NCBI GenBank assembly: GCA_038496445.1 | Contig: JALMLS010000507.1 | Coordinates: 558,001 to 622,000, forward strand | Source: Trichosphaerium sp. ATCC 40318 | Lineage: Eukaryota; Protista; Tubulinea | Length of the DNA stretch: 64,000 bases | Direction of reading: 5' to 3' | In this document: positions 1 through 58,977 of the stretch, in pieces | Layout of the letters: each line of letters starts with the position of its first letter | How positions within the stretch are numbered: position 1 is the first letter of the stretch | Position numbers and translations under genes: made by a program | Notes under the pieces: generated by a model | What the model saw: only the letters and a program-made list of their open reading frames with translations | What the model was told of the DNA's origin: nothing | Databases searched by the model: none

Positions 1-1385
1 GCGAGGAGTATTGGAAACACGGCAAACGACACGGAGAGCACAAGATGTGGCATAAGAACGGTGTATTAGAATTACAGTGTAATTTTGTGGACGGTAAGCG
101 AGAAAAAGAGTATAAGAGTTGGTATGAAAACGGTCAATTGCGTGAAGATCGTACGTTTATCGAAGGTAAACAAAATGGACACTATAAGAAGTTCCATGAC
201 AATGGTAACTTGCTTGAGGAATGCAGTTATGTTAATGGTAAGCGAGAAGGGGAGTGCAAGCGCTTGTATAATGATGGTAAGTTACTTGATGAGTGTTTTT
301 TTGTCAACGGTAAGCGAGAGGGAGAGTATAAGAGTTGGTATGCCAATGGACAGCTTCTTGAAGATCGTATGTTTGTTGAAGGTAAACAAATTGGAGAATA
401 TAAACGTTTCTACAATGACGGTCACTTGTTTAAGGAGTGTGATTATGAGGATGGTTACCGAGAAGGAGAGTATAGGATTTGGCACAATAACGGTCAATTG
501 AATGTACTTTGTAAGTACATCAATGGCGAGCTGAATGGACGGTACAAAGTGTGGTCTAGCCGTGGTCAGGTTATTGAGATGAGTGACTATGTTGATGGTA
601 AGAGAGAAAGAGATTATACACGCTGGTATGAAAGCGGCCAAGTACTTGAAGAGTGTGAATTCGTAAACGGTGAACCAAAAGGAGTTTACAAAAAGTGGTT
701 TCAAAATGGTCAATTAAATGAGCAAGTTTATTGCTTAAATGGTAAACAGCATGGAGAATATAACAAGTGGCATGATGATGGTCAGTTAGTAGAACATTGT
801 AATTTAATTGAAGGAAAACTACATGGAGAATACAAACAATTCAATGTCCTGACTGAACAGTTGATTAAGAAATGTAATTATCTTGATGGTAAGCTTGATG
901 GTGAGTATAGGACTTGGTATTTCAATGGAAACCCAAAAACCCAATGTTATTACATCAACGGCAAAGTAAATGGACGGCTTAAAGCATGGGACTGGGTTGG
1001 TAGATTGCAAGATAATGTTATTTGTGTCAATGGTTATAGAGCTGGAAATGCTACTAGTTTCCAATGTAAACGTGTTAATGGTAAACTACATGGAGAGTAT
1101 AAAAGAATGATTAAAGGGCAGTTAGTAGAGAAAGGTCATTTTGTACAAGGTGAACGTCATGGAGAGTGTACATTTTGGCTTTGTGATGGTACATTATCTG
1201 AACAGTACAATTATGCTAAAGGTAGACGAGAAGGTGTTTATAAGAGTTGGTATGATAATGGTCAGTTGTATGAAGAGTATAGTTACATTAATGATAAGAA
1301 GGAAGGAGAATGTAAGCGTTGGCTTAAAAGTGGTAAACTGTATGAGCACTTCAATTACATTAATAATAAAAGAGAAAGTGACTGA
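1..1385 (+). CDS. MORN-variant (MORN_2/YwqK-like) repeat protein, intronless, 5'-truncated by the window edge
   Basis: About 24-aa repeats G-K-R-E-G-E-Y-K-x-W-Y-x-N-G-Q-L throughout; the frame is open from position 3; AATAAA follows the stop. Confidence 0.9.
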   Translation, partial: EEYWKHGKRHGEHKMWHKNGVLELQCNFVDGKREKEYKSWYENGQLREDRTFIEGKQNGHYKKFHDNGNLLEECSYVNGKREGECKRLYNDGKLLDECFFVNGKREGEYKSWYANGQLLEDRMFVEGKQIGEYKRFYNDGHLFKECDYEDGYREGEYRIWHNNGQLNVLCKYINGELNGRYKVWSSRGQVIEMSDYVDGKRERDYTRWYESGQVLEECEFVNGEPKGVYKKWFQNGQLNEQVYCLNGKQHGEYNKWHDDGQLVEHCNLIEGKLHGEYKQFNVLTEQLIKKCNYLDGKLDGEYRTWYFNGNPKTQCYYINGKVNGRLKAWDWVGRLQDNVICVNGYRAGNATSFQCKRVNGKLHGEYKRMIKGQLVEKGHFVQGERHGECTFWLCDGTLSEQYNYAKGRREGVYKSWYDNGQLYEEYSYINDKKEGECKRWLKSGKLYEHFNYINNKRESD

Positions 1386-1506: not shown

Positions 1507-2736
1507 TTATTTACCATGAACCCACATGTATTGTCCTTTAACTTGTCCATTTTTGTACCATGATTTACTCTCGCCATGTAGGTTACCATCAACCCATGTG
1601 GCTTGATATTTTAGTTTTTCATCTTCATACCATCCTTTACCTTCACCATGGCGTTTGCCATGAGCCCACATGAACTGGTCCTTGAGTTGTCCGTTTTCAT
1701 ACCACGATTTACTTTTGCCATGTATTTTACCATTAACCCACATGGATTGAGTGAGTAGTTGTCCATTTTCATACCATGATTTACGTTTGCCATGTCTGTT
1801 ACCATCAACCCACATGGATTGACTTTTTAGCTGTCCATTGTTATGCCATTCTTTAAATTCACCATGCTGTTCACCATTAACCCATGTGGATTGAGTTCGT
1901 AGTTGTCCATTTTCATACCATCTTTTACATTCGTTGTGCTGTTTATCATCAGCCCACATGGCTTGTTTTTGAAGTTGGCCGTTTTCATACCATTCTTTAC
2001 TTTCGCCATGGCGATTACCATGAGCCCACTTGAATTGTCTTTTAATGTGTCCATTATCATACCAATCTTTGTGTTCACCATGCCGTTCACCATTAATCCA
2101 TGTGGATTGATTTTGTAGTTGTCCATTTTCATACCAACTTTTACATTCACCGTGCTGTTTATCATCAGCCCACATGGCTTGTTTTTGAAGTTGGCCATTT
2201 TCATACCATTCTTTACTTTTCCCATCTATTTTACCATCAACAAACATGCATTGTCCTTTAAGTTGGCCGTGATTATACCATATCTTCATTTCACCTTCTA
2301 GTTTACCATCTACTAATATGTACTGCTTCTTAAGTGATCCACTATCATGCCACTCTTTATACAAACCGCTCATTGCATATTGATGAGACTGTACTTTTCC
2401 ACTTTTATACCATCTTATCCATGTACCTTTTCTTTTTAATGTTTCATCAAAATGTGTATTTGTTGCTGCTCTCTTTGACAAAGTGTGGAATTTTGTGAAC
2501 GCTTCTATATTGAAGGAACAAATATACGTTTGAAGTTCACATGGAATATCCAATAACCCCAAAGAGTCCAATTCGCTGCCCGAATTTTTTATACATTTGG
2601 GATGTGACTTAATAAAATGTATAAGCCACAATGTAATAGTACTATGTGCAGGCACAGGGTTTATGTGCAAAAATATTTGTGTTTTTAAGAAGTTACACCC
2701 CAAGTATGCACTACTTCGATTTGAACTGTACAACAA
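1507..2736 (-). CDS. F-box-like + MORN-variant repeat protein (true start uncertain)
   Basis: LLDIPCELQTYICSF F-box-like motif, then 24-aa WYENGQL...W..G..HG repeats. Confidence 0.85.
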   Translation of the reverse strand: MLYSSNRSSAYLGCNFLKTQIFLHINPVPAHSTITLWLIHFIKSHPKCIKNSGSELDSLGLLDIPCELQTYICSFNIEAFTKFHTLSKRAATNTHFDETLKRKGTWIRWYKSGKVQSHQYAMSGLYKEWHDSGSLKKQYILVDGKLEGEMKIWYNHGQLKGQCMFVDGKIDGKSKEWYENGQLQKQAMWADDKQHGECKSWYENGQLQNQSTWINGERHGEHKDWYDNGHIKRQFKWAHGNRHGESKEWYENGQLQKQAMWADDKQHNECKRWYENGQLRTQSTWVNGEQHGEFKEWHNNGQLKSQSMWVDGNRHGKRKSWYENGQLLTQSMWVNGKIHGKSKSWYENGQLKDQFMWAHGKRHGEGKGWYEDEKLKYQATWVDGNLHGESKSWYKNGQVKGQYMWVHGK

Positions 2737-11722: not shown

Positions 11723-12580
11723 AAAACACCTACAAAAGGGTTTGTGTATTGTAATACTGTAGTTGTTTATTTGTCTAAAGATATTTGTGCTGGTGTTCTC
11801 GGCAGTAAACAACACTAGCCATAAGTGCGTAGAAACTATTAACTTTTCATCGCAGAGTTTTGTGCATCGCGAACGTAGTCAAATCTCACGCCGCATAGCA
11901 ACGTTACTACGATTTTCAAAAAGATTCAAACATCCACTGTAATTGAGTATTGTATCAGATTGCCTTTTAAGGTGATTAATTTTCTTCACAGCAATGTCGC
12001 AATTGTTGTTACTGACCAACTGGAGACAAGATAAAAAGCAATCTGTATTGTCGCTAGATTGCACCTCTTTGGTTCCGGAAAAGGTCAAAGCCTGGTAACT
12101 AGGTAAATAGGGCGCAAGCTAGTTAAATTTTTTTTGGTGCCATTAAACCTCAATTTGGTTCGGACGGAGTCTGTAAACTTTGAAAATCATTCTTGCGCCC
12201 TAGGTCATGGCGGCGACACTACCACAGAGGCACCTCATACCACATAAACGCCGCTCCTTCATTTTCACGTGTAAAGGATCGTGTACTGTAAAAAAAAGAA
12301 AAGATAGACTATTTATTTAAATCCTCTTCTTTTTTTGGGCGTTGTTAATCCAATTCGCATACCTGTGGAGAGCCAATTTAAGACAGCAGTAAATTATCCA
12401 ATTTGAGTTTTACCGCCAAATTCTAAAACCAAATATTCACCTTATTTGCGGTACACTTTTTCACCCATTTTGTTAGCGGACATGAAGAAAGTACTTTAAC
12501 GGCATTAGTGTTCTATGTAAATAAGGTAACTTAAACTATATTACGAAACTTAAGCTGTCTACCGTACTTCACTTTTTCCC

Positions 12581-13602
12581 ATGAACGCAGAACTTGCTAA
12601 CTACGAGTTAAATATTACTACTAATTTCATCGAGTACAAGGCACGTATCTATGATATAGCACTATGAAAACGGTTTGCGTTTGGATCGTGCGTACGCGAC
12701 CTTAACCGTCAACTGCCTGGTAACGCAGGTTTGCTGGAAGTGATGTGTTGTCACTACGTTTTCACACTTAGCGCGCCCAACGATCCAATCAGCGGCTACA
12801 GCAACTCCTACTGTGGTGTACGCGACCTTAACCGTCAACTGCCTGGTAACGCAGGTTTGCTGGAAGTGATGTGTTGTCACTACGTTTTCACACTTAGCAC
12901 GGATCTCAGTAGGATGCGCAACAACTTGTTTTTACATTTGTTTTCTAGTGTGAAGTTAAAATCGAGCCAAAACAGAGCACTACGCAGGAGTGCTTTAGGC
13001 CTGAGCAAAACTTGCGTGGCGCCCTGTTTCGGCGCATTTACGCGTGCATACCTTTTAATGGTACTTTTTAGGCTTTGGTAGATGCAGAACTACGTCGACA
13101 ACTAGCTTTAAAAGACGCCGAGGTAGAGGAGGCTAGAGAGAAGGCTAGAGAGCAACAAGCAAAAGATGGCGCCAAAATACAAGCGCTTCTGGCTAAAAAC
13201 CGCAAATTAACACAAGCAAGAAAAAACGTAAAGCGCAAGTACGCACAGCTCATCAAACAGTGTGGAAAGTGGGAAGATCGCGCGAGAGAAATGAAACGCC
13301 AAAAAATTGCCATTGAGGAAAATTCGTATACTGCACTGTGCTGCAACCTACACGGTTCGCTTGCAGAACAGGAAAGAAACAAACAGCGAGCGGATTGGGG
13401 CGCTGATGAAGAAAAGAAGCCGCGTGAACTACCAGAAGGACTTGACTACGATTCTGAAGATTCTGGCGAAGACTACCACGATACGAATGATGGTGATTAC
13501 CGGCAACCTGTTGAGGATGTCCACTCAGTACGCAAATAATTCTACGCGATATTCAAACTTTGTTTTTTTTTTTTGAAACTAACCGTCCTATTGTAGGAAT
13601 AA
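12581..13602 (+). CDS. Uncharacterised coiled-coil/acidic-tail protein, paralog A. Exons 12581-12640, 13072-13527, 13597-13602
   Basis: Phase-0 GC-AG intron 12641-13071 joins MNAELANYEL...YK to ALVDAELRRQ; shares WE.RAREMKRQKI, RADWGADE and NDGDY.QP with the gene at 42420; last intron and SE-stop conserved. Confidence 0.75.
12692..12898 (+). repeat. Two identical 81-nt direct repeats (12692-12772, 12818-12898), period 126
   Basis: GTACGCGACC...CACTTAGC occurs twice exactly. Confidence 0.97.
12966..13033 (+). ncRNA. Candidate long intronic hairpin (pre-miRNA-like)
   Basis: GCC-A-AAACAG-A-GCACTACGCAGG pairs with CTTGCGTGGCGC-C-CTGTTT-C-GGC; covaries with 42813-42881. Confidence 0.55.
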
Positions 13603-13950
13603 TCTTAGTGCTTTGTTCTCTATTAGTTTTGATCTGTACAGTGTAATTTAAAATAAAGTTGTAATATTATGTAATTTAGAACAGTTATTGAGTTGTGTTT
13701 CTTTGTTTTACTGGCTCGGATACAATTTAACTAAAAACAACTCTTTTTAACGCGTCAGGCTATCATTTTTTGAAGTGGTGTTAGTGCCCTTTTGGTGGAC
13801 TAGTAGTCGGAGTAGATACCATAAGTATACGATTTGTGACAGTGTAGTTTCTAACATAACAAACGTTCTTTTCTGCAGTTAAAACGCGTTACGTCCATTA
13901 TTTGTAAACTGGGAGATACATAGGGGTTTAGGTAAAATTGCAAAAAGACA

Positions 13951-14024
13951 TGATTCCGTTGGGGATCGAACCCAAGACCTTCTGCGTGTAAAGCAGATGT
14001 GATAACCAACTACACCACGGAATC
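13951..14024 (-). tRNA. tRNA-Val(TAC)
   Basis: GATTCCG acceptor, TCTGC-TTTACAC-GCAGA anticodon arm, GGTTCGATCCC T-loop, T5 terminator downstream. Confidence 0.97.
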
Positions 14025-20817: not shown

Positions 20818-21637
20818 TCACGGGTCTCTTTTCATAACTGTACCCATTTTGTAGATATTGACACTTTGAAGTATACCTGTGATACCCCACTCTCTAAACT
20901 CTCCATTTCTTACTCCTTTTTTAAAATGACATTTGGCTCTTAACTTACCATTTGGATGCCATTGCTTTGCCTCACCTTCTTTTAACCCTTTAACTTTAGT
21001 ACAATAATAAGTTAATTGACCATTATCATGCCAATTCTTTACATCACCTTCTGCGTTATCATCCTTCATAAAACACTCAATATGTAGCTTTCCATTCGGA
21101 TGCCATTGTGTGAATACACCATCTTCCTTTCCATTCTTCATTGTACATTTTACATGTAACTGTCCATTTGCATGCCACTGTGTATAATCACCTTCTTCCA
21201 AGTCATTGATATAAGTACTTATGCAATGAACTTGACCATTCTTGTGCCATTTTCTTAGTTCTCCTTCACGTTTATTATCTTTATAATGCGTCCTACTATG
21301 TAACTCTCCTGTACTGTAGTATCCATATGATATACCATCCATTTTACCATCTTTAAAATGTGTTGATTGACGTAAACGTTCTCCGTTTTTGGACCATTTA
21401 AGCCAAATTCCATTTTTATCAAAAGATGAATTAAAGTGAGTTAAAGTCGCTGCACGTTTACATAAAAGGTGCCAAGAAACGAATATTTCTGGGTCTAAGG
21501 AACAGGTTTTACGTTGTAATTCTGGCAGGAGGTGTAAGAGTGTAGAACATACTGGCGAAAGCGAAAGAGCTGGAATTCAACGTTAGTTTATAGGGTAGTA
21601 TGCGTTACGTACTGCGCTTTTGTTCTTTGGCACTCAT
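20818..21637 (-). CDS. F-box-like + MORN-variant repeat protein (one 5' intron)
   Basis: N-terminal LLHLLPELQRKTCS...KRAATLTHF...GIWLKW is homologous to the gene at 1507-2736; W-H-x-N-G-Q-L repeats. Confidence 0.88.
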
Positions 21638-26408: not shown

Positions 26409-26943
26409 ATGAGCAATGAAGTGGCTAAACAATCTGAGCCGCCAGAAGGTAACGTCTTATTAGCTCTTATTGGCTACAAATTGCTGGAAAGTACGTAACG
26501 TAACGTTCGTAGGCCATTTGGTAAAACGTGAACCAAACAACCCACCACCACGCCCCTGTGATATATACGTTACCAAAAAAAGTAATGTAGCAGCTGTATG
26601 CCGCAAAGCAGTAAAAAAACTTGAAAAGTGCGTTAAAACTGCCCGTATACGTTTGTTTACGCGTTTTAGTAATGAATACGTTGTAATACACGGTCTTGGA
26701 GCGGCTGTCAACAAGGCAGTTCAAACCGCTTTACAACTCAAAACACAGAGCTGTGGCTCCCTAGAAATATGGCCCAGAACATCAACAGTTGCTCTAGTAG
26801 ATGATTTTGTGCCGTCAAACAACTCTAAACCGATTACATCAGCAATTCGTAATAGTTCTGCAATACACATCAAAGTTGCTCACAAATACGCACCGAAGCA
26901 ACGATTCTTAGTTCGATACGACAGAACGTACGCACTGAAATAA
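26409..26943 (+). CDS. POP7: RNase P/MRP subunit Rpp20 (Alba fold)
   Basis: KREP...DIYVTKKS...IHGLGAAVNKA...TSTVALVDDF...RNSSAIHIKV. Confidence 0.9.
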
Positions 26944-41237: not shown

Positions 41238-41573
41238 TGTGTTAGTTCGGTAGTTATAATGCTAGTGAAAAAAAAAAGCACCAATTAAAACGGTTCACTG
41301 AACTGATCTAATGAGCTGTTCGCTGATGTAACAACTAAAGTTATATTAATAGACCCAATGCATACCTCTATTTCTTTTACAGCTTTGTTATGCTTGACAG
41401 CTTATATACGACGTACTGTAACAGCTAACTGAACAAAAATAGAAAAAAAAGTGTTCATAGCAATTGCTGGAAGATAAAAAAAAGAGATGATTGCGTCTCG
41501 TGCCCTACACCGTTTCCTTGTTTGGAATCGGCCTAGGCGCTAGCCAAACACACCGGACCACGAAGTATTAATA

Positions 41574-41654
41574 ATAAATTAAAAGTTTATCGCTCTACCA
41601 CTGAGCTACATCCCATAGTTTTAGCTGGGATGGTGGGAATCGAACCCACGCACA
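41574..41654 (-). tRNA. Circularly permuted tRNA-Lys(TTT): 3' half at 41654-41625 precedes 5' half at 41615-41574
   Basis: Minus strand reads TGTGC GTGGG-TTCGATT-CCCAC CATCCCA G [CTAAAACTA] TGGGATG TA GCTC-AGTGGTA-GAGC G ATAAA-CTTTTAA-TTTAT; all four stems pair perfectly. Confidence 0.8.
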
Positions 41655-42419: not shown

Positions 42420-43451
42420 ATGGACCAAATTGCTAATTACGAGCTGAAGGTTACTACTGAAAGTAATTTTGCCGAATTCAAGGCACGTATCTACGATATA
42501 GCATTATTTAAACGGCCTGCGATTTGATCGTGCGTACGTAACCCTCAACGTCAACAGGCTGGTAATGCAGCCTGGTTGGAAGCGATGTGTGTCATTACGT
42601 TTTCGCACTTAGCGCCCCAAACGATCGAATTAATGGTTACATGCGACTTCTACTGGCGTGTACGTAACCCTCAACGTCAACAGGCTGGTAACGCAGCCTG
42701 GTTGGAAGCGATGTGTGTCATTACGTTTTCGCACTTAGCACAAGTCCAGTAGTAGAAAGAGCAGCCACTTGTATTTTATACATTTGTTTTCCTAGTGTGA
42801 AGTTCAATTCGAGCCAAAACAGAGCGCTATGCAAGGAGTGCTTGAGATCTCAGTAAAACTTGCATAGCGCCCTGTTTCGGCGCCATTTGCGCGTGCATTA
42901 ATGGTGTTTTTTTAGGCTTTAGCTATACAAGAAATACGTAACCTGATAGCTGCGCAAGCTGCCAAAGATCGCGAAAGAGACCAACAAGACACAAAAACTG
43001 CTGCCAAAATAAAAGCGCTGGTCGCTGACAACCAGAAACTATCAAAGTCTAATGCCCGTTTGAAGCGTAAACATGAGCAAACCGAAGAAGAATTATCACG
43101 TATACGCATAGAATGTGAGACGTGGGAGGAACGCGCAAGAGAAATGAAAAGACAAAAAATAAGCGCAGAGGACCGCGCAGTTAATGCTGTTCGCCGTAAT
43201 CTACGTGGTTCACCTGAAGAGGAGGCAGAAGATAACCGCCGAGCAGATTGGGGTGCCGACGAAGTACGAAGGGTGCGGGTTCCTAGAGTTGCTAGAGCTG
43301 AGAGGGAGGACTCCTCGGACGATTCTGGTGAAAGCCGGCAAGATATCAATGATGGCGACTACAATCAACCTGACGAAGAAGCCTATTCAGTACGTCACTA
43401 ATACTACTTCTTCATGTTTTTCTATTTCGTGTAACTCTATTGTAGGAGTAA
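42420..43451 (+). CDS. Uncharacterised coiled-coil/acidic-tail protein, paralog B. Exons 42420-42482, 42916-43389, 43446-43451
   Basis: Same exon-intron layout and motifs as 12581-13602; GC-AG intron 42483-42915. Confidence 0.75.
42534..42739 (+). repeat. Two 80-nt direct repeats (42534-42613, 42660-42739; one mismatch), period 126
   Basis: GTACGTAACC...CACTTAGC occurs twice; homologous to 12692-12898. Confidence 0.97.
42813..42881 (+). ncRNA. Candidate long intronic hairpin (pre-miRNA-like)
   Basis: GCGCTATGCAAG/CTTGCATAGCGC is a perfect 12-bp stem, extended by AAACAG/CTGTTT and GCC/GGC. Confidence 0.55.
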
Positions 43452-48537: not shown

Positions 48538-51500
48538 CTACTCTACTGTGTACGCATGTACTTTCTTAGACTTAGTTTCTTTTGTTTCTGGTGGATTCAC
48601 AGATAACGTCAAAATAAAGCTTCCAGATACTGTATGAGATGTTCCCGACTTGGGATTAATACCACTCACTTGATCAAAAATAATGGACACAATGTCTGAC
48701 TCGACCTCTACAACCTTTGTTAGCATGTAACACAAAGCCTAGCTATGAAGTAAAACATAGAGTACGTACCTTCTTGTATGAGGTGAATAATAGAGGGTTG
48801 GAGCTTAACAGCACCCTATAAAAGTTGTAAGAAAAAAAGCGGAATAAAAGAAAAAAACATAAAACAAAGAAGTGACTGCTTGGTGCCATACCATGAACTC
48901 GTCTTTGCCGAATTTATCATAATCAAATATAATGACATGAAGGTTTTCAGTATAAGGAACTTGTGTGATATACTGCTCAAGTTGCCAGGAAGGATTACAT
49001 GTCTTTTTCTTTGTTTTTGATTTCCAAAGTTTGTTTTTCATATCAGGTGTATACATCACAATGTAAGGATCAGAACTTCCTGATAAAATCGTCATACACA
49101 AAATCTTGCACGTACATACTAACAAGTACAAGAGAATTCGACAAAATAATTTCGATGACGAATTCTGCGCTTCGAAGAAAAAATCCGGAGTAGACAATTT
49201 TTTTTCGCATGCTACAACAAAAAAACAAGTTCCAGTTCTCATTCAAACCCGAGTTTCCTCCAGCCCCACAGAAAGATACTACGTTATTTCGCTGAAAGAA
49301 TGGTATTTTTCAAGGCGTGGGGGAAAAAGAAGATGAAGAATTTGAATGATTTGAACCGTCACGTTGATGAGACAACACTAGGCAATTTCTTGCTTAGGGT
49401 TAGCCTTACATCAAGGTATAAAAGAAAGGTTTTTGCGCTATATACATACTAGCTCTAGAGCTTCGTTTACCATTGATATCCTTAGCAGCAAGCTCAATGC
49501 CCTTCATTCCCCATATTGTAATATCACATGTACTATTTTTAGGATAATTGTCTTCAAGCTTGTACAACCTGTCCATCATTGCAGGAGATAAATGCTTTGC
49601 ATTCTCGGATTCTACTTCAGAATTTGGTACTCTGATCTCACTTGATAATCTCTGGGTATTGATTGGATCTTGAAATTGTAAAAGACAAATATTGAACGAA
49701 ACTTCAGAATGGTAAAAAAGGGTAAAAAAGGATACATTCCAATTCGTCTTTACCAAAACCAAAGGTTTTAATTAACCCTTCGCACTTGGTACATGTCTTG
49801 ACTGGATCATCAATACCAAATAGCGCTGGTACACAGTATTCCTCAGGTGTGAAGCACGTTTTCTTGTCACAGAGAATGCAACTGCAGATTGGACAAACAA
49901 ACTACCACAAGATTAAAATAACTACAACCAAAAAATACAACGTACTTTCTTCTTGCCTAACTTTTTACTACAGAGATTACATTTCCTCTTATTCTTATTT
50001 GGATTTCCAACTATCACAAAGTTAACAACGTATATATACTAAAACTTTAATATAAAGCATACCAATAACTTGAGAACGAAGCTTAGTAGCAATAGAAGAT
50101 GATAACATTGGTAATGCAACCAATTTATAATTACTATCTCTCTTTTCTTTAGCCTTAATAGCCTGGACGTTATCTCTAATGTAATCAATACACTTTTTTC
50201 TAAAGCAAGCATTAACAAATAAACTATAAGTATTATCAATACCTCAAATGTTTAGCACCAATATTATGTGCAGCTATAATAATTCTTGTAACATTTTCTG
50301 GTTTTAGATCCTTAGAACATTCTCTCTCGTAATGTTGCTGTTTTTTCTGTACCACAAGTTTCGTTAGTGAGGTTATTATAACGTTGTAATAACGCATACC
50401 TTGTCTTTAAATGTATGTGCAAGAACCATCAATGCTAAATCTTTCTTTTCCTTCATCTTCAAGTGTGCGTCAACGTAAGCCATGAAATCGGCTTTAAGTT
50501 CATATGGCCAACTATCTGTTTCACCAGCCTTAACAAGGGCGGTTAAAAAAATGCTTCTCATAACTTCTCGCTCTTTTGCTCGTACCTGCTTTGGGATCTC
50601 TATCAATTTCTCAAGGAGGTACTTAAGTACACCTTGTTGAAAGTTGTAGAATGGGTTGTTTTTCGGCAAGGCTACCCATTTATAAGCTTTCACTCCCCTC
50701 CCCAAGTTACGTACCGATAATGTGTGATTGGATAGCTGGTTGAACAACAGGTGAATTAGCTGGTTGCGGACTTCCACGCAGAATTGATGACGCTGATCGT
50801 ACTGGAGGTGCATCCGAACCACTATTGCAGCAATTAGAAAGACAAATGAAAATCTAAATGAAAGAACATACGGTAGTACTTGAGGCATTTGGTCACCAAG
50901 TATTACCGACATTCTAAGATTACGTTACTACACTACTTTTTTTTTTTAATCACGTGCTTTCTTGCTGAAGGAGAATGAGAAACTGGTGCCATACCAGCAA
51001 GTGGATTTGGTACGCTAGTTACTGTAGTTGGGTCGTGAATTTGTTGCCACATTTGTCCTTCTGTAAAAGAAAAGAATATGAGCTTAACGTCGTAATACAA
51101 ACTTCTCAATTGTACGTACCGCGTATTAATAGATCATAAACATAACCTATGCCTGCTACATCAACCTCAATATCATAGATATCCTTGACAATGAAAGATA
51201 TAGCTTTAATTTTAAGTGCTTCTTCGTTGTAGTTTCCTGCAATATACACAAACTCTTGCATGTCTATTGGAGCGCCTGGGAACAATCTAACACCCAATTA
51301 GCGACACCCAAACAGTACAGCGTACTTCATTGGTATTAAGCATTCTTCAAAGTTCAAACTATACAAACACTTGATAAAAGCACCAAATGAAGGTGGATCA
51401 ACATCAGTAACCTACCAATATTAATCAAGACGAAAAAAATAAAAAGACTTACTGTAATTTGTCGATTTTGGCTTTCAACCATTCCGTGGCTCAACATGCG

Positions 51501-54090: not shown

Positions 54091-57000
54091 ATGTCGTTCG
54101 ATGGAGATGATCCACCGACGTCTGTTTTCTCTAAACCAGGAGGAGCAAGTAGTAGACTAGAGCAAATTGATGCGGACACCGATATTTTTGGTCTCAACAC
54201 TCAAAACTACGACACAGATGATGTTAGTAGCGTAATTTTGACTTTGGGAGTCTTACAAGCCTTAGAATGTTGTTGTTGGGTTAGAAACCTCTCAAGACGA
54301 TAGCACAACTGCCGAAGATAGCTATGAAACAGAAGACATAGTAAGTAAAAACATTTTAGGTTTAAATCTGACTCGTCAGGTGATTGAACAGTTGGAAGTG
54401 GTAGATGACCGCGCAAGCACCTCTGCTTCGTTTAAAAGCAAACACCAAAAGGCACGAGCGCCTTTAACGCATTGGTGGGGATCCGTGAAGGAGTCTGTAA
54501 AGAAGGTTTTCCACCGCCCAAAGCATTACCATGACAGGTAAGCAACGTTGACAGCAATCAAAAAAAAGCTTTGTTATCGAAAACTTTTACCCGAGTTTTA
54601 CGCGTATGCGCTTTATATTTATCGCATAGGTTAGGCGCTAGCGTTGTTTTTTCTAACTTTTATATAGGACGGTAGAATTCACTAACGGACGGGTGACAGT
54701 AGTTACTCAGCAGCGTAAATTACCCGCAAACGTTATTAAAAATCAGAAATATAGCATTATAACATTTATCCCTGGTACGCTCTAAAATCCTCCCAACACT
54801 CGGTAGATAACGCTATTGTTTGTTTTAAAAATCTTCGTCTCATTACTAGCCTCTGATAACGTTTTTTAGTCGTGCTTTACGAGCAATTCAAGTTTTTCTT
54901 GAATCTTTACTTTTTGATTGTTGCACTATCACAGTTCATCCCAGCGTTGCAAGTTGGTACGTGACATTAGCACGCGATTTTATTTAGTGGTTTATGACAA
55001 GTTGCCGACTTTCAAATAAAGTGGGTATCAAATACCCGTTAATGTTGTTATTTTAGGGTACCTGTTCACTTATGTGGCTCCTCTTGTATTTGTACTCACT
55101 GTGAGTATACTTAAAGAGGCGTATGATGATTTCCAGCGTTGGTTACGTGATAAACAAGTAAACAATACAATGTATAAGAAACTGACACCTCATGGATTTG
55201 TTGCTATTCCTAGCTTTGAAATTGAAGTAGGAGATCTTGTACAGATAGAAAAGGACCAAAGGGTACGACAACTGTTTTACCTTCTTCTTTTTTGAGTTTG
55301 TATACTCACTTACCACGTAGGTTCCTGCGGATTTAATAATGCTTCGTACCACAGAAAAGAGTGGCGCATCATTTATTAGAACAGATCAATTAGATGGTGA
55401 AACAGATTGGAAATTGCGTAGAGCTGTTCCTTTTTGTCAAAAATACGATACTGATAATGATCTATTGACAATGAGCGCTAGTATTTATGGTACCATTAAA
55501 ATACTAGCGAGTTATCTGAAGAAACTAACTTATTATTAAAAAGTTGAAAAACCAAAAAAAGACATCTACAGCTTTGAAGGGAACTTTACTCATTTTACTT
55601 CTGATTCTAAGAAGGCACGCTTGTTTTTGGTAATAAAAGTCAGTCTACAAAAACTAAATGATGATTTCAGGATGAAGTAGAACCTCTTACTGATGCTAAT
55701 ACTATTTGGTCGTCAACTGTTGTTGCTAGTGGTTCGATTATTGGTTGTGTACGTTGTTTTTTTGATAATGTATAATCTTATTAGTATGGTTAGGTCATTT
55801 ATACCGGTTCTGAGACACGTTCTGTTATGAACACCACACAACCAGGGTCTAAGACTGGAACACTTGATACTGAGCTTAATAATTTATCGAAGGTATGTGC
55901 ATGAGCGTTTATTCTAGTCTATAAGTTTCGCGTTAATGACTTCTTGCAGGTTTTGTTTGCTATGATGGGTGTATTGTCTTTTTTGATGATTGCTTTGAAT
56001 AAATTCCGTGGTATATGGTATATTACATTCTTCCGCTTTGTATTGCTCTTCTCTGCTATCATTCCAATCAGGTGCGTGTGGCTCATATGATGTTGTTAAT
56101 TAAAATATCTCTAATGATGTTACAGTTTACGTGTAAACTTGGATATGGCCAAGACGTTGTATTCGTATTATATGATGCGTGATGCAAAGATTGAAGGCAC
56201 AATTGTTAGAACGAGTACAATTCCAGAAGAATTGGGTAGAATCAATTACTTGTTGACAGATAAGACTGGCACTCTTACACAGAATGGTATGGCTGAATTG
56301 TATTTTTTATTTGATTGATTTTCTTGTAGAAATGATTTTCAAAAAATTACATCTCGGCTCTGTGTCATTCAGTGGTGATACTTTAGACGAAATTAGAAGT
56401 TTATTGAAACAAACCTATTCTACTGATAAGAAAGCAGACCTTTCCACCTCTTCTGTGTTCAGTACGTGGCAATTACATAGCGCAATGTCATTTCATTATA
56501 CCGGTTACTTATTTTTGAACTTTAGCCAAATCCAAGATGGCTAAAACGACTGAAAACCGTATAAGTGTTGCACTACATGCTATGGCATTAGCACATAACG
56601 TCACTCCTACTGTTGATTCAGATGGTGTACGTAGAAACGCGAACTACGTTGTCTTACTCATCCTTTTTTTATAGGTTGTAGAATACCAAGCTAGTAGTCC
56701 TGATGAAGTGGCTCTTGTTAAATTTACAGAAGAAGTTGGTTTAACGCTTTCAAATCGTGATATGAAGACAATAACATTGACAAACCCTAAAAATCGCACC
56801 CAGGTACACATTGTGATTGTACTTTAGTATAGGCATAACTCTAGTACTTAGTCGTATACCATCTTGAATGTATTTCCTTTTACTTCGACTTCTAAACGTA
56901 TGGGTATTATTGTTCGTGATGAAGCTACAGATATAATCACTTTTTATATGAAAGGTATTGCTCATTGTGTTTTTCCTTTAGTTGCAACTATTCTAATGAA

Positions 57001-58977
57001 TTTGATAGGTGCTGATGTAGTAATGAGAGAAATTGTTAAGGCGAACGATTGGTTAGATGAAGAATGCGGTAATATGGCTCGTGAGGGCCTACGTACACTT
57101 GTTTTCGGCAAAAAAGATTTGACTCAAAAGGAGTATGATGCATTTGCTGCCAAGTACGGTCTTGCCTCTTACTTGTGATTGTATGGCTGACGCTGGTTTT
57201 TTTAAGGTTAAAACAAGCGAAGGTTGCAATTAAGAACCGTAAGGTTAATGTGCAAAAGGTTATTGAAGGCTTAGAGAAAGGACTTGGTACGTCATTGATG
57301 GGTGCTCTTTTTTTGCTTACATTTATGATAGATCTCATTGGTTTAACTGGTGTTGAAGATAAACTCCAAGAAGGCGTTAAAGAGACACTTGAAACACTCA
57401 GAAATGCTGGTATCCGTGTTTGGATGTTAACTGGTAAGTCTCAATACTCTTTTGCTTCATCAAGACTGTCCATGCGTTAACAATGATACTTAGGAGATAA
57501 AGTGGAGACTGCAACATGTATCGCTATATCAGCGCGTCTTGTGTCTAGACATCAAACAATCTTTCAATTTCAAGTTAAATCAGCAGCTGATGCACAAGAT
57601 CTTATCGATAAATTCGCTACTAAAAAAGATGCAGCGCTAGTTATTGATGGAAAGTCATTACAAATGTGTCTGGATAACTTTCCAGAACATTTTGTAGAAA
57701 TAGCTTGTAAAGCACCATCCGTACGCACCTTTTAACTCTTAATGTTTTTTTTTTTACTAGTAACTTATATTTTTAACTTAGGTTGTTTGTTGTCGTTGTA
57801 CACCAACACAAAAAGCTGAGATTGTTAAACTTATCAAGGACCATACTGGTAAGAAGACATGTGCTATTGGAGATGGTGGTAATGATGTATCAATGATCCA
57901 AGCAGCGGATGTTGGGTTAGGTATGTGAAAGGATTTTGGTTGTATTTCATTAGCTTATACTTGTGTTTTTAGGTATTGTAGGAAAAGAAGGAAAGCAAGC
58001 TAGCCTTGCTGCTGATTTTTCAATCAATAAATTCCATTACATCAAGCGTCTCATTATTTGGCATGGAAGAAACGCCTGTGCGTTCTTTTTTCTTTCTTCT
58101 CTTTAAAGTCTTGCACATTTTTTTTTTGCTTATGTTTGTATGTTTAGACAAACGCTCAGCCAATTTGGGTCAGTTCGTTATTCATAGAGGTCTTGTAATT
58201 GCTTTTATTCAAGCTGTGTTTTCTGCCATTTTCTACTTTGCTGCAGTAACCATCTATAACGTACGGACCTTTTGACCCCTCATGCAATTTTATTTTTATC
58301 ATTTTTACTTATTCATATCGTAGGGTTGGTTGATTGTTGGGTACAGTACTTTCTATACTATGATGCCAGTCTTTGCTCTTGTATTTGATAGTGATGTATC
58401 AGAGAGTATTGCTTTTCAGTACCCCGAACTTTATAGGGAGTTACAAAAGGTATAAGTTGTGAATTCGTTAAGTAACTCTGATGGTTGTTAACTTTTTTTT
58501 TTCAGGGTCGAGCGTTGTCGTATAAAACCTTTTTTGTATGGGTATTACAAAGTTTGTACCAAGGCGGTGTTATTATGGTTTTGGCTATTGCATTATTCGA
58601 AAGTCAATTTATTAATGTGGTTGCTATTACGTTTACAGTATTGATACTAACTGAATTGCTTAATATCGTTCTGGAGATTCACATTTGGAATCTGATCATT
58701 ATCTTGAGTTTGGTTCTCTCTGTGGTAATTTACTTTGTTAGTATGGCTGTTCTTAAGACGTACTTTGATCTATCATTTGTATTGACGCTGCCATTCTGGT
58801 GGAAGGTACTTTCTCGTTGCTTTGACGAACAAAATTCGAGTTTTTTTTTTGATTGTTCTTACTCTGACGCTTTGTTAGGTTGCTACGATTCTAGCAGTTG
58901 CAGTAATTCCAGTGTATATTATCAAGATCGGCAAGCGTAAACTCGATCCTCCAGCTTACTCAAAACTCAAAGAGTGA
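54091..58977 (+). CDS. ATP9: P4-ATPase phospholipid flippase, class II (ATP9/NEO1)
   Basis: [58 protein letters not shown]. Confidence 0.95.

Follow-up and report, generated by a model that had tools for sequence, protein, structure and literature searches.

We analysed a window of 64,000 nucleotides (nt) from Trichosphaerium sp. ATCC 40318 (GenBank assembly GCA_038496445.1, contig JALMLS010000507.1, positions 558,001 to 622,000 of the forward strand). All coordinates given below are those of the window. It contains two small paralogous genes on the plus strand, locus A (12581-13539) and locus B (42420-43401), situated 30 kb apart. Both are interrupted by a long intron with GC-AG boundaries, and this intron, a candidate structured RNA, is the subject of the present work. 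The gene layout is the same at both loci: a first exon of 20 or 21 codons that ends with AAG is followed by an insert (431 or 433 nt) and then by a second exon with 155 or 161 codons. At locus A, coding exon 1 (12581-12640) runs for 20 codons from an ATG start and ends in phase 0, the substitutions that separate it from its paralogue being of the coding type, and exon 2 (13072-13539) has 155 codons and a stop codon. At locus B, the exons are 42420-42482 (21 codons) and 42916-43401 (161 codons and a stop codon).

The encoded coiled-coil protein contains a stretch of basic residues and has an acidic tail. No homologues of it were found in two large protein libraries, no Pfam family was matched, and the atlas neighbours were of low confidence only. 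The host gene is a fast-evolving orphan. Four RNA-type sequencing runs contain 7-36% of the sampled words of the region 12300-13700; these libraries thus include the locus or a part of it, but the measure does not distinguish which part is represented.

The long intron and its conservation

Only one frame-preserving splice is common to both loci, AAG|GCACGT ... TTTTTAG|GCT. It removes a phase-0 GC-AG intron, 431 nt at locus A (12641-13071), where the frame continues from AAG to GCT, and 433 nt at locus B (42483-42915). An earlier note on this DNA had described the intron as conserved, modular and structured, with the donor AAG|GCACGTATC. This donor is the same at both loci, and the GC-AG call is backed by the logic of the reading frame. 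The note was also right that both introns are several times longer than those typical here. The gene of a P4-type phospholipid-flippase ATPase (55074-58940, plus strand) has at least 19 introns, and the 19 introns in the region 55.2-58.5 kb are 42-82 nt long.

The two introns align along their full length, with 353 of the 422 aligned positions identical (84%) and 20 gap columns. The exons are less conserved: the proteins are 48.5% identical, and the identity at codon positions 1, 2 and 3 is 68%, 70% and 50%, respectively. Four-fold degenerate sites in codons for identical residues are identical in 17 of 31 cases (55%). The earlier note had stated that its structural claim would fall if intron identity were no higher than that of silent exon sites; the comparison showed it to be higher. 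The Jukes-Cantor distance is approximately 0.18 for the intron and approximately 0.7 for silent sites. The intron has thus changed about four times slower than silent coding sites since an old duplication. In windows of 20 columns, identity stays at 0.60-0.95 throughout the intron, from the first 25 nt downstream of the donor to the tail, and drops to 0.50-0.65 within some 10 nt of the acceptor. High identity is confined to the intron and does not reach into the flanking exons.

This pattern could in principle arise with no RNA function at all, by interlocus gene conversion limited to the intron, with the exons left to diverge under selection. A distance of only 30 kb separates the loci, conversion is clearly active within each of them, where twin cores inside the intron are 99% identical, and homogenised introns beside divergent exons are known from other gene families. 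However, the divergence of approximately 16% is evenly spread rather than arranged in tracts, and the limits of the similarity match both splice sites. Substitutions also respect base pairing far beyond slid and shuffled controls, and the asymmetry between the strands points to RNA, as described in the next section. We therefore consider conversion alone a highly improbable explanation.

A coding role of the repeated units within the intron was rejected as well: a 1-nt indel between the cores of loci A and B breaks all frames, and the open reading frames (ORFs) across the units differ. Homologues of the intron were not found when a DNA pattern was compared with metagenome contigs, among which a protein profile of the host gene had no match either. 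A hairpin pattern had no match in prokaryote genomes. In the IMG/VR collection, one viral contig (L001, positions 1921-1941, minus strand) contains 21 nt identical to the 3' end of the unit core of locus A (CACTAC ... ACTTAGC); its surroundings are dissimilar, and we judged the match to be due to chance. Within the window, nhmmer and blastn-short yielded no further copies and no complementary targets.

Twin units, helices and the 3' hairpin

Each intron contains two similar units, which lie 51 nt and 177 nt inside the intron and repeat with a period of 126 nt at both loci. The units are 99% identical within a locus and approximately 80% identical between the loci. Each consists of an outer clamp helix P1 (8-11 bp), a helix P1b (4 bp), a hairpin P2 (5-7 bp) with the loop GUAAYG, and a helix P3' (4 bp, GYGA/UCRC). 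The four clamp stems quoted in the earlier note lie where it had placed them, and its observation that the GTAAYG-loop hairpin covaries was borne out, a C-G pair in one locus corresponding to a G-C pair in the other.

In unit 1 of locus A (12681-12788), P1 is formed by 12681-12689/12780-12788, P1b by 12690-12693/12771-12774, P2 by 12715-12719/12726-12730 with the loop GTAACG, and P3' by 12740-12743/12762-12765. The 80-nt core of this unit (12692-12771) is identical to that of unit 2 (12818-12897). In unit 2 (12806-12914), the corresponding helices are P1 12806-12813/12907-12914, P1b 12816-12819/12897-12900, P2 12841-12845/12852-12856 and P3' 12866-12869/12888-12891. The differences between the two units of locus A in P1 and P1b form compensatory pairs. 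At locus B, unit 1 (42521-42631) has the clamp 42521-42531/42621-42631 around a 79-nt core (42534-42612), and unit 2 (42648-42754) has the clamp 42650-42656/42746-42752 around a core of the same length (42660-42738).

Two further predicted helices involve the intron ends and the segments around the units. In the consensus fold of both whole introns produced by RNAalifold, the donor GCACGU pairs with GCGUGC located 19-24 nt from the 3' splice site, so that the GC donor of locus A (12641-12646) forms the 5' strand of a closing helix with 13042-13047 (GCGTGC). The same consensus fold contains a helix enclosing both units, formed by the leader strands GCACTA and AAAC (12659-12671) and the linker strands GTTT (12940-12943) and TAGTGT (12946-12951); one change in it, from C-G to U-G, is tolerated in locus B. 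At locus B, the donor (42483-42488) pairs with 42891-42896 and the leader (42501-42506) with the linker (42793-42798). The predicted closing helix GCACGU/GCGUGC, a candidate for a zipper stem that would join the surroundings of the 5' splice site to those of the branch point, is present at both loci in the consensus fold, with invariant strands. It has a competitor: in the single-sequence minimum free energy (MFE) structure of locus A, the donor pairs with CGTGC at 12686-12690. The helices with 12686-12690 and with 13042-13047 may be mutually exclusive. The boxes CGTGC and GCACG recur at the unit borders of locus A (12686-12690 and 12896-12900), and the 12896-12900 box is not conserved in locus B. 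The tail of locus A (13048-13071) contains a branch-like TTTTAAT, a T-run and the acceptor TAG; only 24 nt separate the closing helix from the 3' splice site.

The thermodynamically strongest element of the intron is a long hairpin in its 3' part. At locus A (12964-13035), it has a stem of approximately 25 bp with 1-nt internal loops, the shape of a microRNA precursor (pre-miRNA), and an MFE of -35.2 kcal/mol (z -3.6). At locus B (42813-42881), the stem has approximately 27 bp and the MFE is -39.4 kcal/mol (z -6.7). The arms are conserved and the apical loop is divergent. The stem differs between the loci by one compensatory change from C-G to U-A, an A-C mismatch replaced by G-C, one U-G replaced by U-A and one G-C replaced by G-U; there are no disruptive changes.

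The four-helix model of the unit was evaluated on the alignment of all four units. Of its cells, 93.7% are paired, versus 30-43% after displacement of the partners by 1-3 columns. Two-sided changes affect eight pairs: five belong to P1, and P1b, P2 and P3' contribute one each. For the whole intron, the consensus energy is -106.4 kcal/mol compared with -69.1 +/- 5.9 kcal/mol in 200 column shuffles (z -6.3), shuffles of this kind preserving mononucleotide columns only. The whole-intron fold has seven compensatory pairs versus 3.5 +/- 1.6 in the shuffled alignments, seven being reached in 7 of 200 shuffles, and 13 one-sided changes that keep the pair. The covariation evidence is real but thin, because the twin units in a locus are 99% identical and only two independent sequences contribute. 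Folded as a single sequence, the intron of locus B has an MFE z-score of -3.8. The unit interiors of locus B modestly beat their shuffles (z -2.9 for unit 1 and -2.5 for unit 2), whereas those of locus A do not (z -0.5 and -1.2).

The structure has a strand. The consensus energy of the plus strand (-106.4 kcal/mol) is better than that of the minus strand (-83.1 kcal/mol), and the plus-strand fold contains 39 G-U cells; therefore the structure belongs to the sense RNA, and an antisense RNA was rejected on the same grounds. The best explanation of these observations is that the whole intron is a sense-strand RNA structure under purifying selection, and the intron RNA probably has a function. In this respect the selected RNA structure proposed in the earlier note stood up to the slid and shuffled controls. 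Of the candidate functions on its list, a tandem aptamer or ribozyme, a small-RNA precursor, and splicing control, the first lacks any sign of a known ribozyme or aptamer, whereas the last two remain live.

Known RNA families were compared with the intron in several ways. At the gathering thresholds of Rfam 15, the whole window yields two tRNA matches only, both elsewhere, in agreement with the note, which had recognised no family. With E-values up to 10, both introns match generic microRNA (miRNA) models alone, and all these matches fall on the 3' hairpin; their scores are 15-21 bits against thresholds of 70-100, and they assign the hairpin to no miRNA family. A box C/D small nucleolar RNA (snoRNA) was rejected, as RUGAUGA occurs in neither intron and CUGA occurs once, in locus A only, in the hairpin loop. 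For a box H/ACA snoRNA, the motifs ACAGCA (in the spacer) and ACA (following unit 2) are present in locus A, but the matching sites of locus B read ACATGC and lack ACA; moreover, the unit interior consists of two hairpins rather than a single upper stem, and this candidate was rejected too. The hammerhead, other self-cleaving ribozymes and the thiamine pyrophosphate (TPP) riboswitch were rejected, there being no Rfam match at E-values up to 10 and no CUGANGA motif in the introns.

A ligand-sensing aptamer or a self-cleaving ribozyme in each unit, the pair forming a tandem riboswitch or ribozyme within the intron, is the least probable of the explanations that we considered. The layout of the unit does resemble a three-way junction (P1/P1b, P2 and P3') with conserved junction and loop nucleotides, and the tandem arrangement recalls tandem aptamers. 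Eukaryotic TPP riboswitches act via alternative splicing, and the splice sites embedded in P1b recall them. On the other hand, besides the absence of Rfam riboswitch or ribozyme matches even at E=10 and of the hammerhead core, the unit interiors fold weakly, the host is not a metabolic gene, and the junction differs between the loci at 5 of 19 positions, which is much for a ligand pocket.

Splice signals within the units and candidate functions

The introns of the P4-ATPase gene provide a local splice code. Of the 19 introns, nine begin with GTACG and two with GTGCGT; three end with ACTTAG, and TTAG acceptors are frequent too. The outer donor of the long intron, GCACGT, is the GC form of this consensus. 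The same hexamer is the donor of at least three further short GC-AG introns that look plausible (44-69 nt) and join long open frames, at 50957, 32306 and 31577 (all on the minus strand). GC donors look routine in this genome, and what sets the long intron apart is its length, not its donor.

The stretch that is identical within each locus begins with GT and ends with AG plus one base (columns 15-95 of the four-unit alignment). The unit core reads GTACGY, an interior, CAYTAC, a T-run and ACTTAG, and is 79-80 nt long; in unit 1 of locus A it runs from GTACGC to CACTAC, the T-run and ACTTAG. By the local code, each core is thus a complete predicted intron nested in the outer one, with the local 5' consensus, a T4 tract, the acceptor and a length within the range of 42-82 nt. 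Over both strands (128 kb), the pattern GTACG, 35-85 nt, ACTTAG is restricted to the four units and the real intron 57721-57781, with 0.8 occurrences expected. In the helix P1b, the G and U of the core donor are paired with the base that follows AG and with the G of AG. The helix covaries, a C-G pair of unit 1 (GCGU/GCGC) being replaced by U-A in unit 2 (GUGU/GCAC) at both loci. This exact bounding of the repeated cores by GT and AG is a feature that the earlier note had missed, and, as read from the sequence, it is the most telling one.

Any use of the internal sites would be unproductive. Read-through from exon 1 reaches a stop codon after 8 codons in locus A and 14 codons in locus B. The segment between the units, a putative decoy exon, is 46 nt in locus A and 47 nt in locus B. 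This segment is the least conserved part of the intron (approximately 76%), whereas the candidate introns flanking it are the most conserved.

We tentatively favour, at somewhat less than even confidence, the reading that the intron is a cis-acting cassette in which RNA structure gates the splicing of its own gene. With the clamps and the closing helix formed, the internal GT/AG pairs would be shut and looped out. The looping-out would bring the GC donor, weak in appearance but locally normal, within the local range of intron lengths from the branch region, and productive mRNA would result. If the helices failed to form, or if a factor bound the unpaired nucleotides conserved in the twin units, the spliceosome would be engaged by the strong donors and acceptors inside the intron. 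Since every product of the internal sites would carry a premature stop or a frameshift, the output would fall. A speculative candidate for this factor is the host protein, a coiled coil; the presence of two identical sites in each locus would then be explained. The coincidence of the limits of high identity with the limits of the intron, leader and tail included, supports the cassette reading.

Identity within a locus combined with approximately 20% divergence between the loci requires local gene conversion only; co-evolution of the units with a locus-specific partner would be an attractive but speculative reading of the same pattern.

A number of observations weigh against the cassette. The outer and internal junctions are predictions from the sequence. 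The strands of the closing helix, and most of those of the leader-linker helix, do not vary between the loci and so have no covariation support. The intron of locus A alone folds only marginally better than its shuffles (z -1.3), and structure within the units is weak (z -0.5 to -2.9). The host protein carries no RNA-binding signature. The identity of the twin cores within a locus can stem from plain gene conversion. Finally, a gate does not obviously need 80 conserved nt per unit with covarying P2 and P3', nor a pre-miRNA-like hairpin, and RNA products fit these features better.

The last point leads to the main alternative, namely that the intron hosts RNA products, which we regard as possible but somewhat doubtful. 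The mini-introns presented by the clamps would be excised by nested splicing, the resulting 80-nt RNAs would be functional, the hairpin would be cut to a small RNA of Dicer size, and the helices would merely present these modules and permit removal of the long intron. The unit interiors are conserved, P2 and P3' covary, and the unpaired blocks are invariant. Twin near-identical copies are typical of clusters of non-coding RNAs. The hairpin has the stem length and the few bulges of the structural criterion for pre-miRNAs (at least about 22 bp; here 25-27 bp), its z-scores are -3.6 and -6.7, and all changes in its stem keep or gain pairing. An orphan, fast-evolving host is often seen with snoRNA and miRNA host genes, and a product that is an excised intron would be expected to have a core with GT and AG as its exact limits, as is the case here. 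However, the signatures of known small RNAs are absent: the C/D boxes are not conserved, the H/ACA boxes occur in locus A only, and the end pairing of mirtrons is lacking. Indeed, a mirtron was rejected directly, as the ends of the core are not complementary and its interior folds into two short hairpins. Hosting of products also fails to explain why the leader next to the donor, the spacer and the tail are conserved, and no complementary target was found within the window.

Compaction alone might also maintain the helices. The units would then be old inserted and duplicated introner-like elements, and the helices would let a spliceosome tuned to 40-80 nt remove an intron of 430 nt while ignoring the internal sites, with neither regulation nor a product. 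The local introns are indeed short, the distance between the closing helix and the 3' splice site is 19-24 nt, and the clamps loop the units out. The introner-like elements and symmetrical stwintrons of fungi share the resemblance to introns, the structure and the repetition (PMC8469720). However, deletion of the units would be an easier escape than their upkeep. Outside the splice signals and clamps, the interiors of the units are conserved at approximately 80%, with silent sites near saturation. Besides, a search with nhmmer --max detected no other copy of the unit in the 64-kb window, and the metagenome, genome and viral collections yielded no matches. Compaction as the sole role is therefore improbable in our view.

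Two bolder possibilities follow from the nested architecture, and together we consider them rather unlikely. The first is a new class of intron-borne modules, 80-nt mini-introns in the loops of clamp helices, so that one host intron would release several functional RNAs excised by the spliceosome together with a small RNA from the hairpin. In the second, the twin modules would be paired sensors for a dimeric factor toggling between productive and unproductive splicing. Either way, the module would be co-evolving within each paralogue.

Relation to known systems and neighbouring features

The closest parallels to the favoured cassette are found among introns of yeast ribosomal-protein genes, which use a zipper stem with an alternative regulatory structure, as in RPL7B, or cross-regulation between paralogues, as in the feedback of RPL22A/B (PMC12311795, PMC5755908, PMC4838235). 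There, too, a long intron stands out where introns are short or few, the structure is common to paralogues, and in yeast the splicing is regulated. In contrast, the host here is an orphan coiled-coil protein rather than an RNA-binding ribosomal protein, the intron has two internal pairs of splice sites and a long hairpin, and feedback is shown in yeast only.

Another parallel is provided by decoy or poison exons in detained or retained introns, such as those of SF3B1 and OGT, where conserved internal 3' and 5' sites are used unproductively (PMC6097662, PMC12017769); decoy splice sites of this kind enforce intron retention (PMC6097662). The segment of 46 or 47 nt between a strong acceptor and a strong donor is similar in its arrangement. 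However, the putative decoy exon is here the least conserved part, and the RNA clamps of the units have no counterpart in those introns.

Fungal stwintrons and introner-like elements resemble the present intron as introns within an intron, with near-identical repeats and an inverted-repeat or symmetrical structure joining the ends (PMC8469720). By the definition given there, the internal intron of a stwintron splits the donor, branch or acceptor of the external one. In our case the external donor GCACGT, the tail and the acceptor are uninterrupted, and a stwintron was rejected. Furthermore, those elements spread to new genes and decay fast, whereas the units described here are constrained and occupy a single conserved position in both old paralogues. 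As for intronic pre-miRNA hairpins, the 3' hairpin shares with them the stem of 25-27 bp, small symmetric internal loops, conserved arms, a divergent loop and the intronic site, but fits no miRNA family and scores far below the gathering thresholds.

Conserved structured introns with regulatory or host roles are a kind already known. The unusual part is the nested architecture, in which splice-site pairs are embedded in clamp helices, the module is present in twin copies and a pre-miRNA-like hairpin adjoins them; the intron fits no described family. A 430-nt intron that evolves slowly and retains its pairing in a genome with introns of 40-80 nt is a strong candidate for an intronic RNA with a function. 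Splicing of the units, should it occur, would provide a clean natural example of nested splicing that serves regulation or the release of RNAs, and would reveal how a short-intron spliceosome handles a long intron. If the units are masked decoys, structure-gated unproductive splicing would extend beyond fungi and animals.

Some other features of the window may be mentioned. A canonical tRNA-Val(TAC) gene is located at 13951-14024 on the minus strand, approximately 400 nt downstream of locus A. Approximately 800 nt upstream of locus B, at 41522-41615 on the minus strand, Rfam calls a tRNA (only 32.5 bits) with a 42-nt insertion 3' of the anticodon arm; ARAGORN makes no call there. An ORF for an Rpp20/Alba-type subunit of RNase P/MRP (26470-26943, plus strand) has one relative, 47% identical, among 5.8 billion protein clusters; judged from this ORF, the source organism is very thinly covered by public protein data. 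Long arrays of 72-nt (24-residue) MORN-type repeats occupy the region 45-2736, in the ORFs 45-1385 (plus strand) and 1507-2736 (minus strand), and a MORN_2 ORF is also present at 20818-21342.

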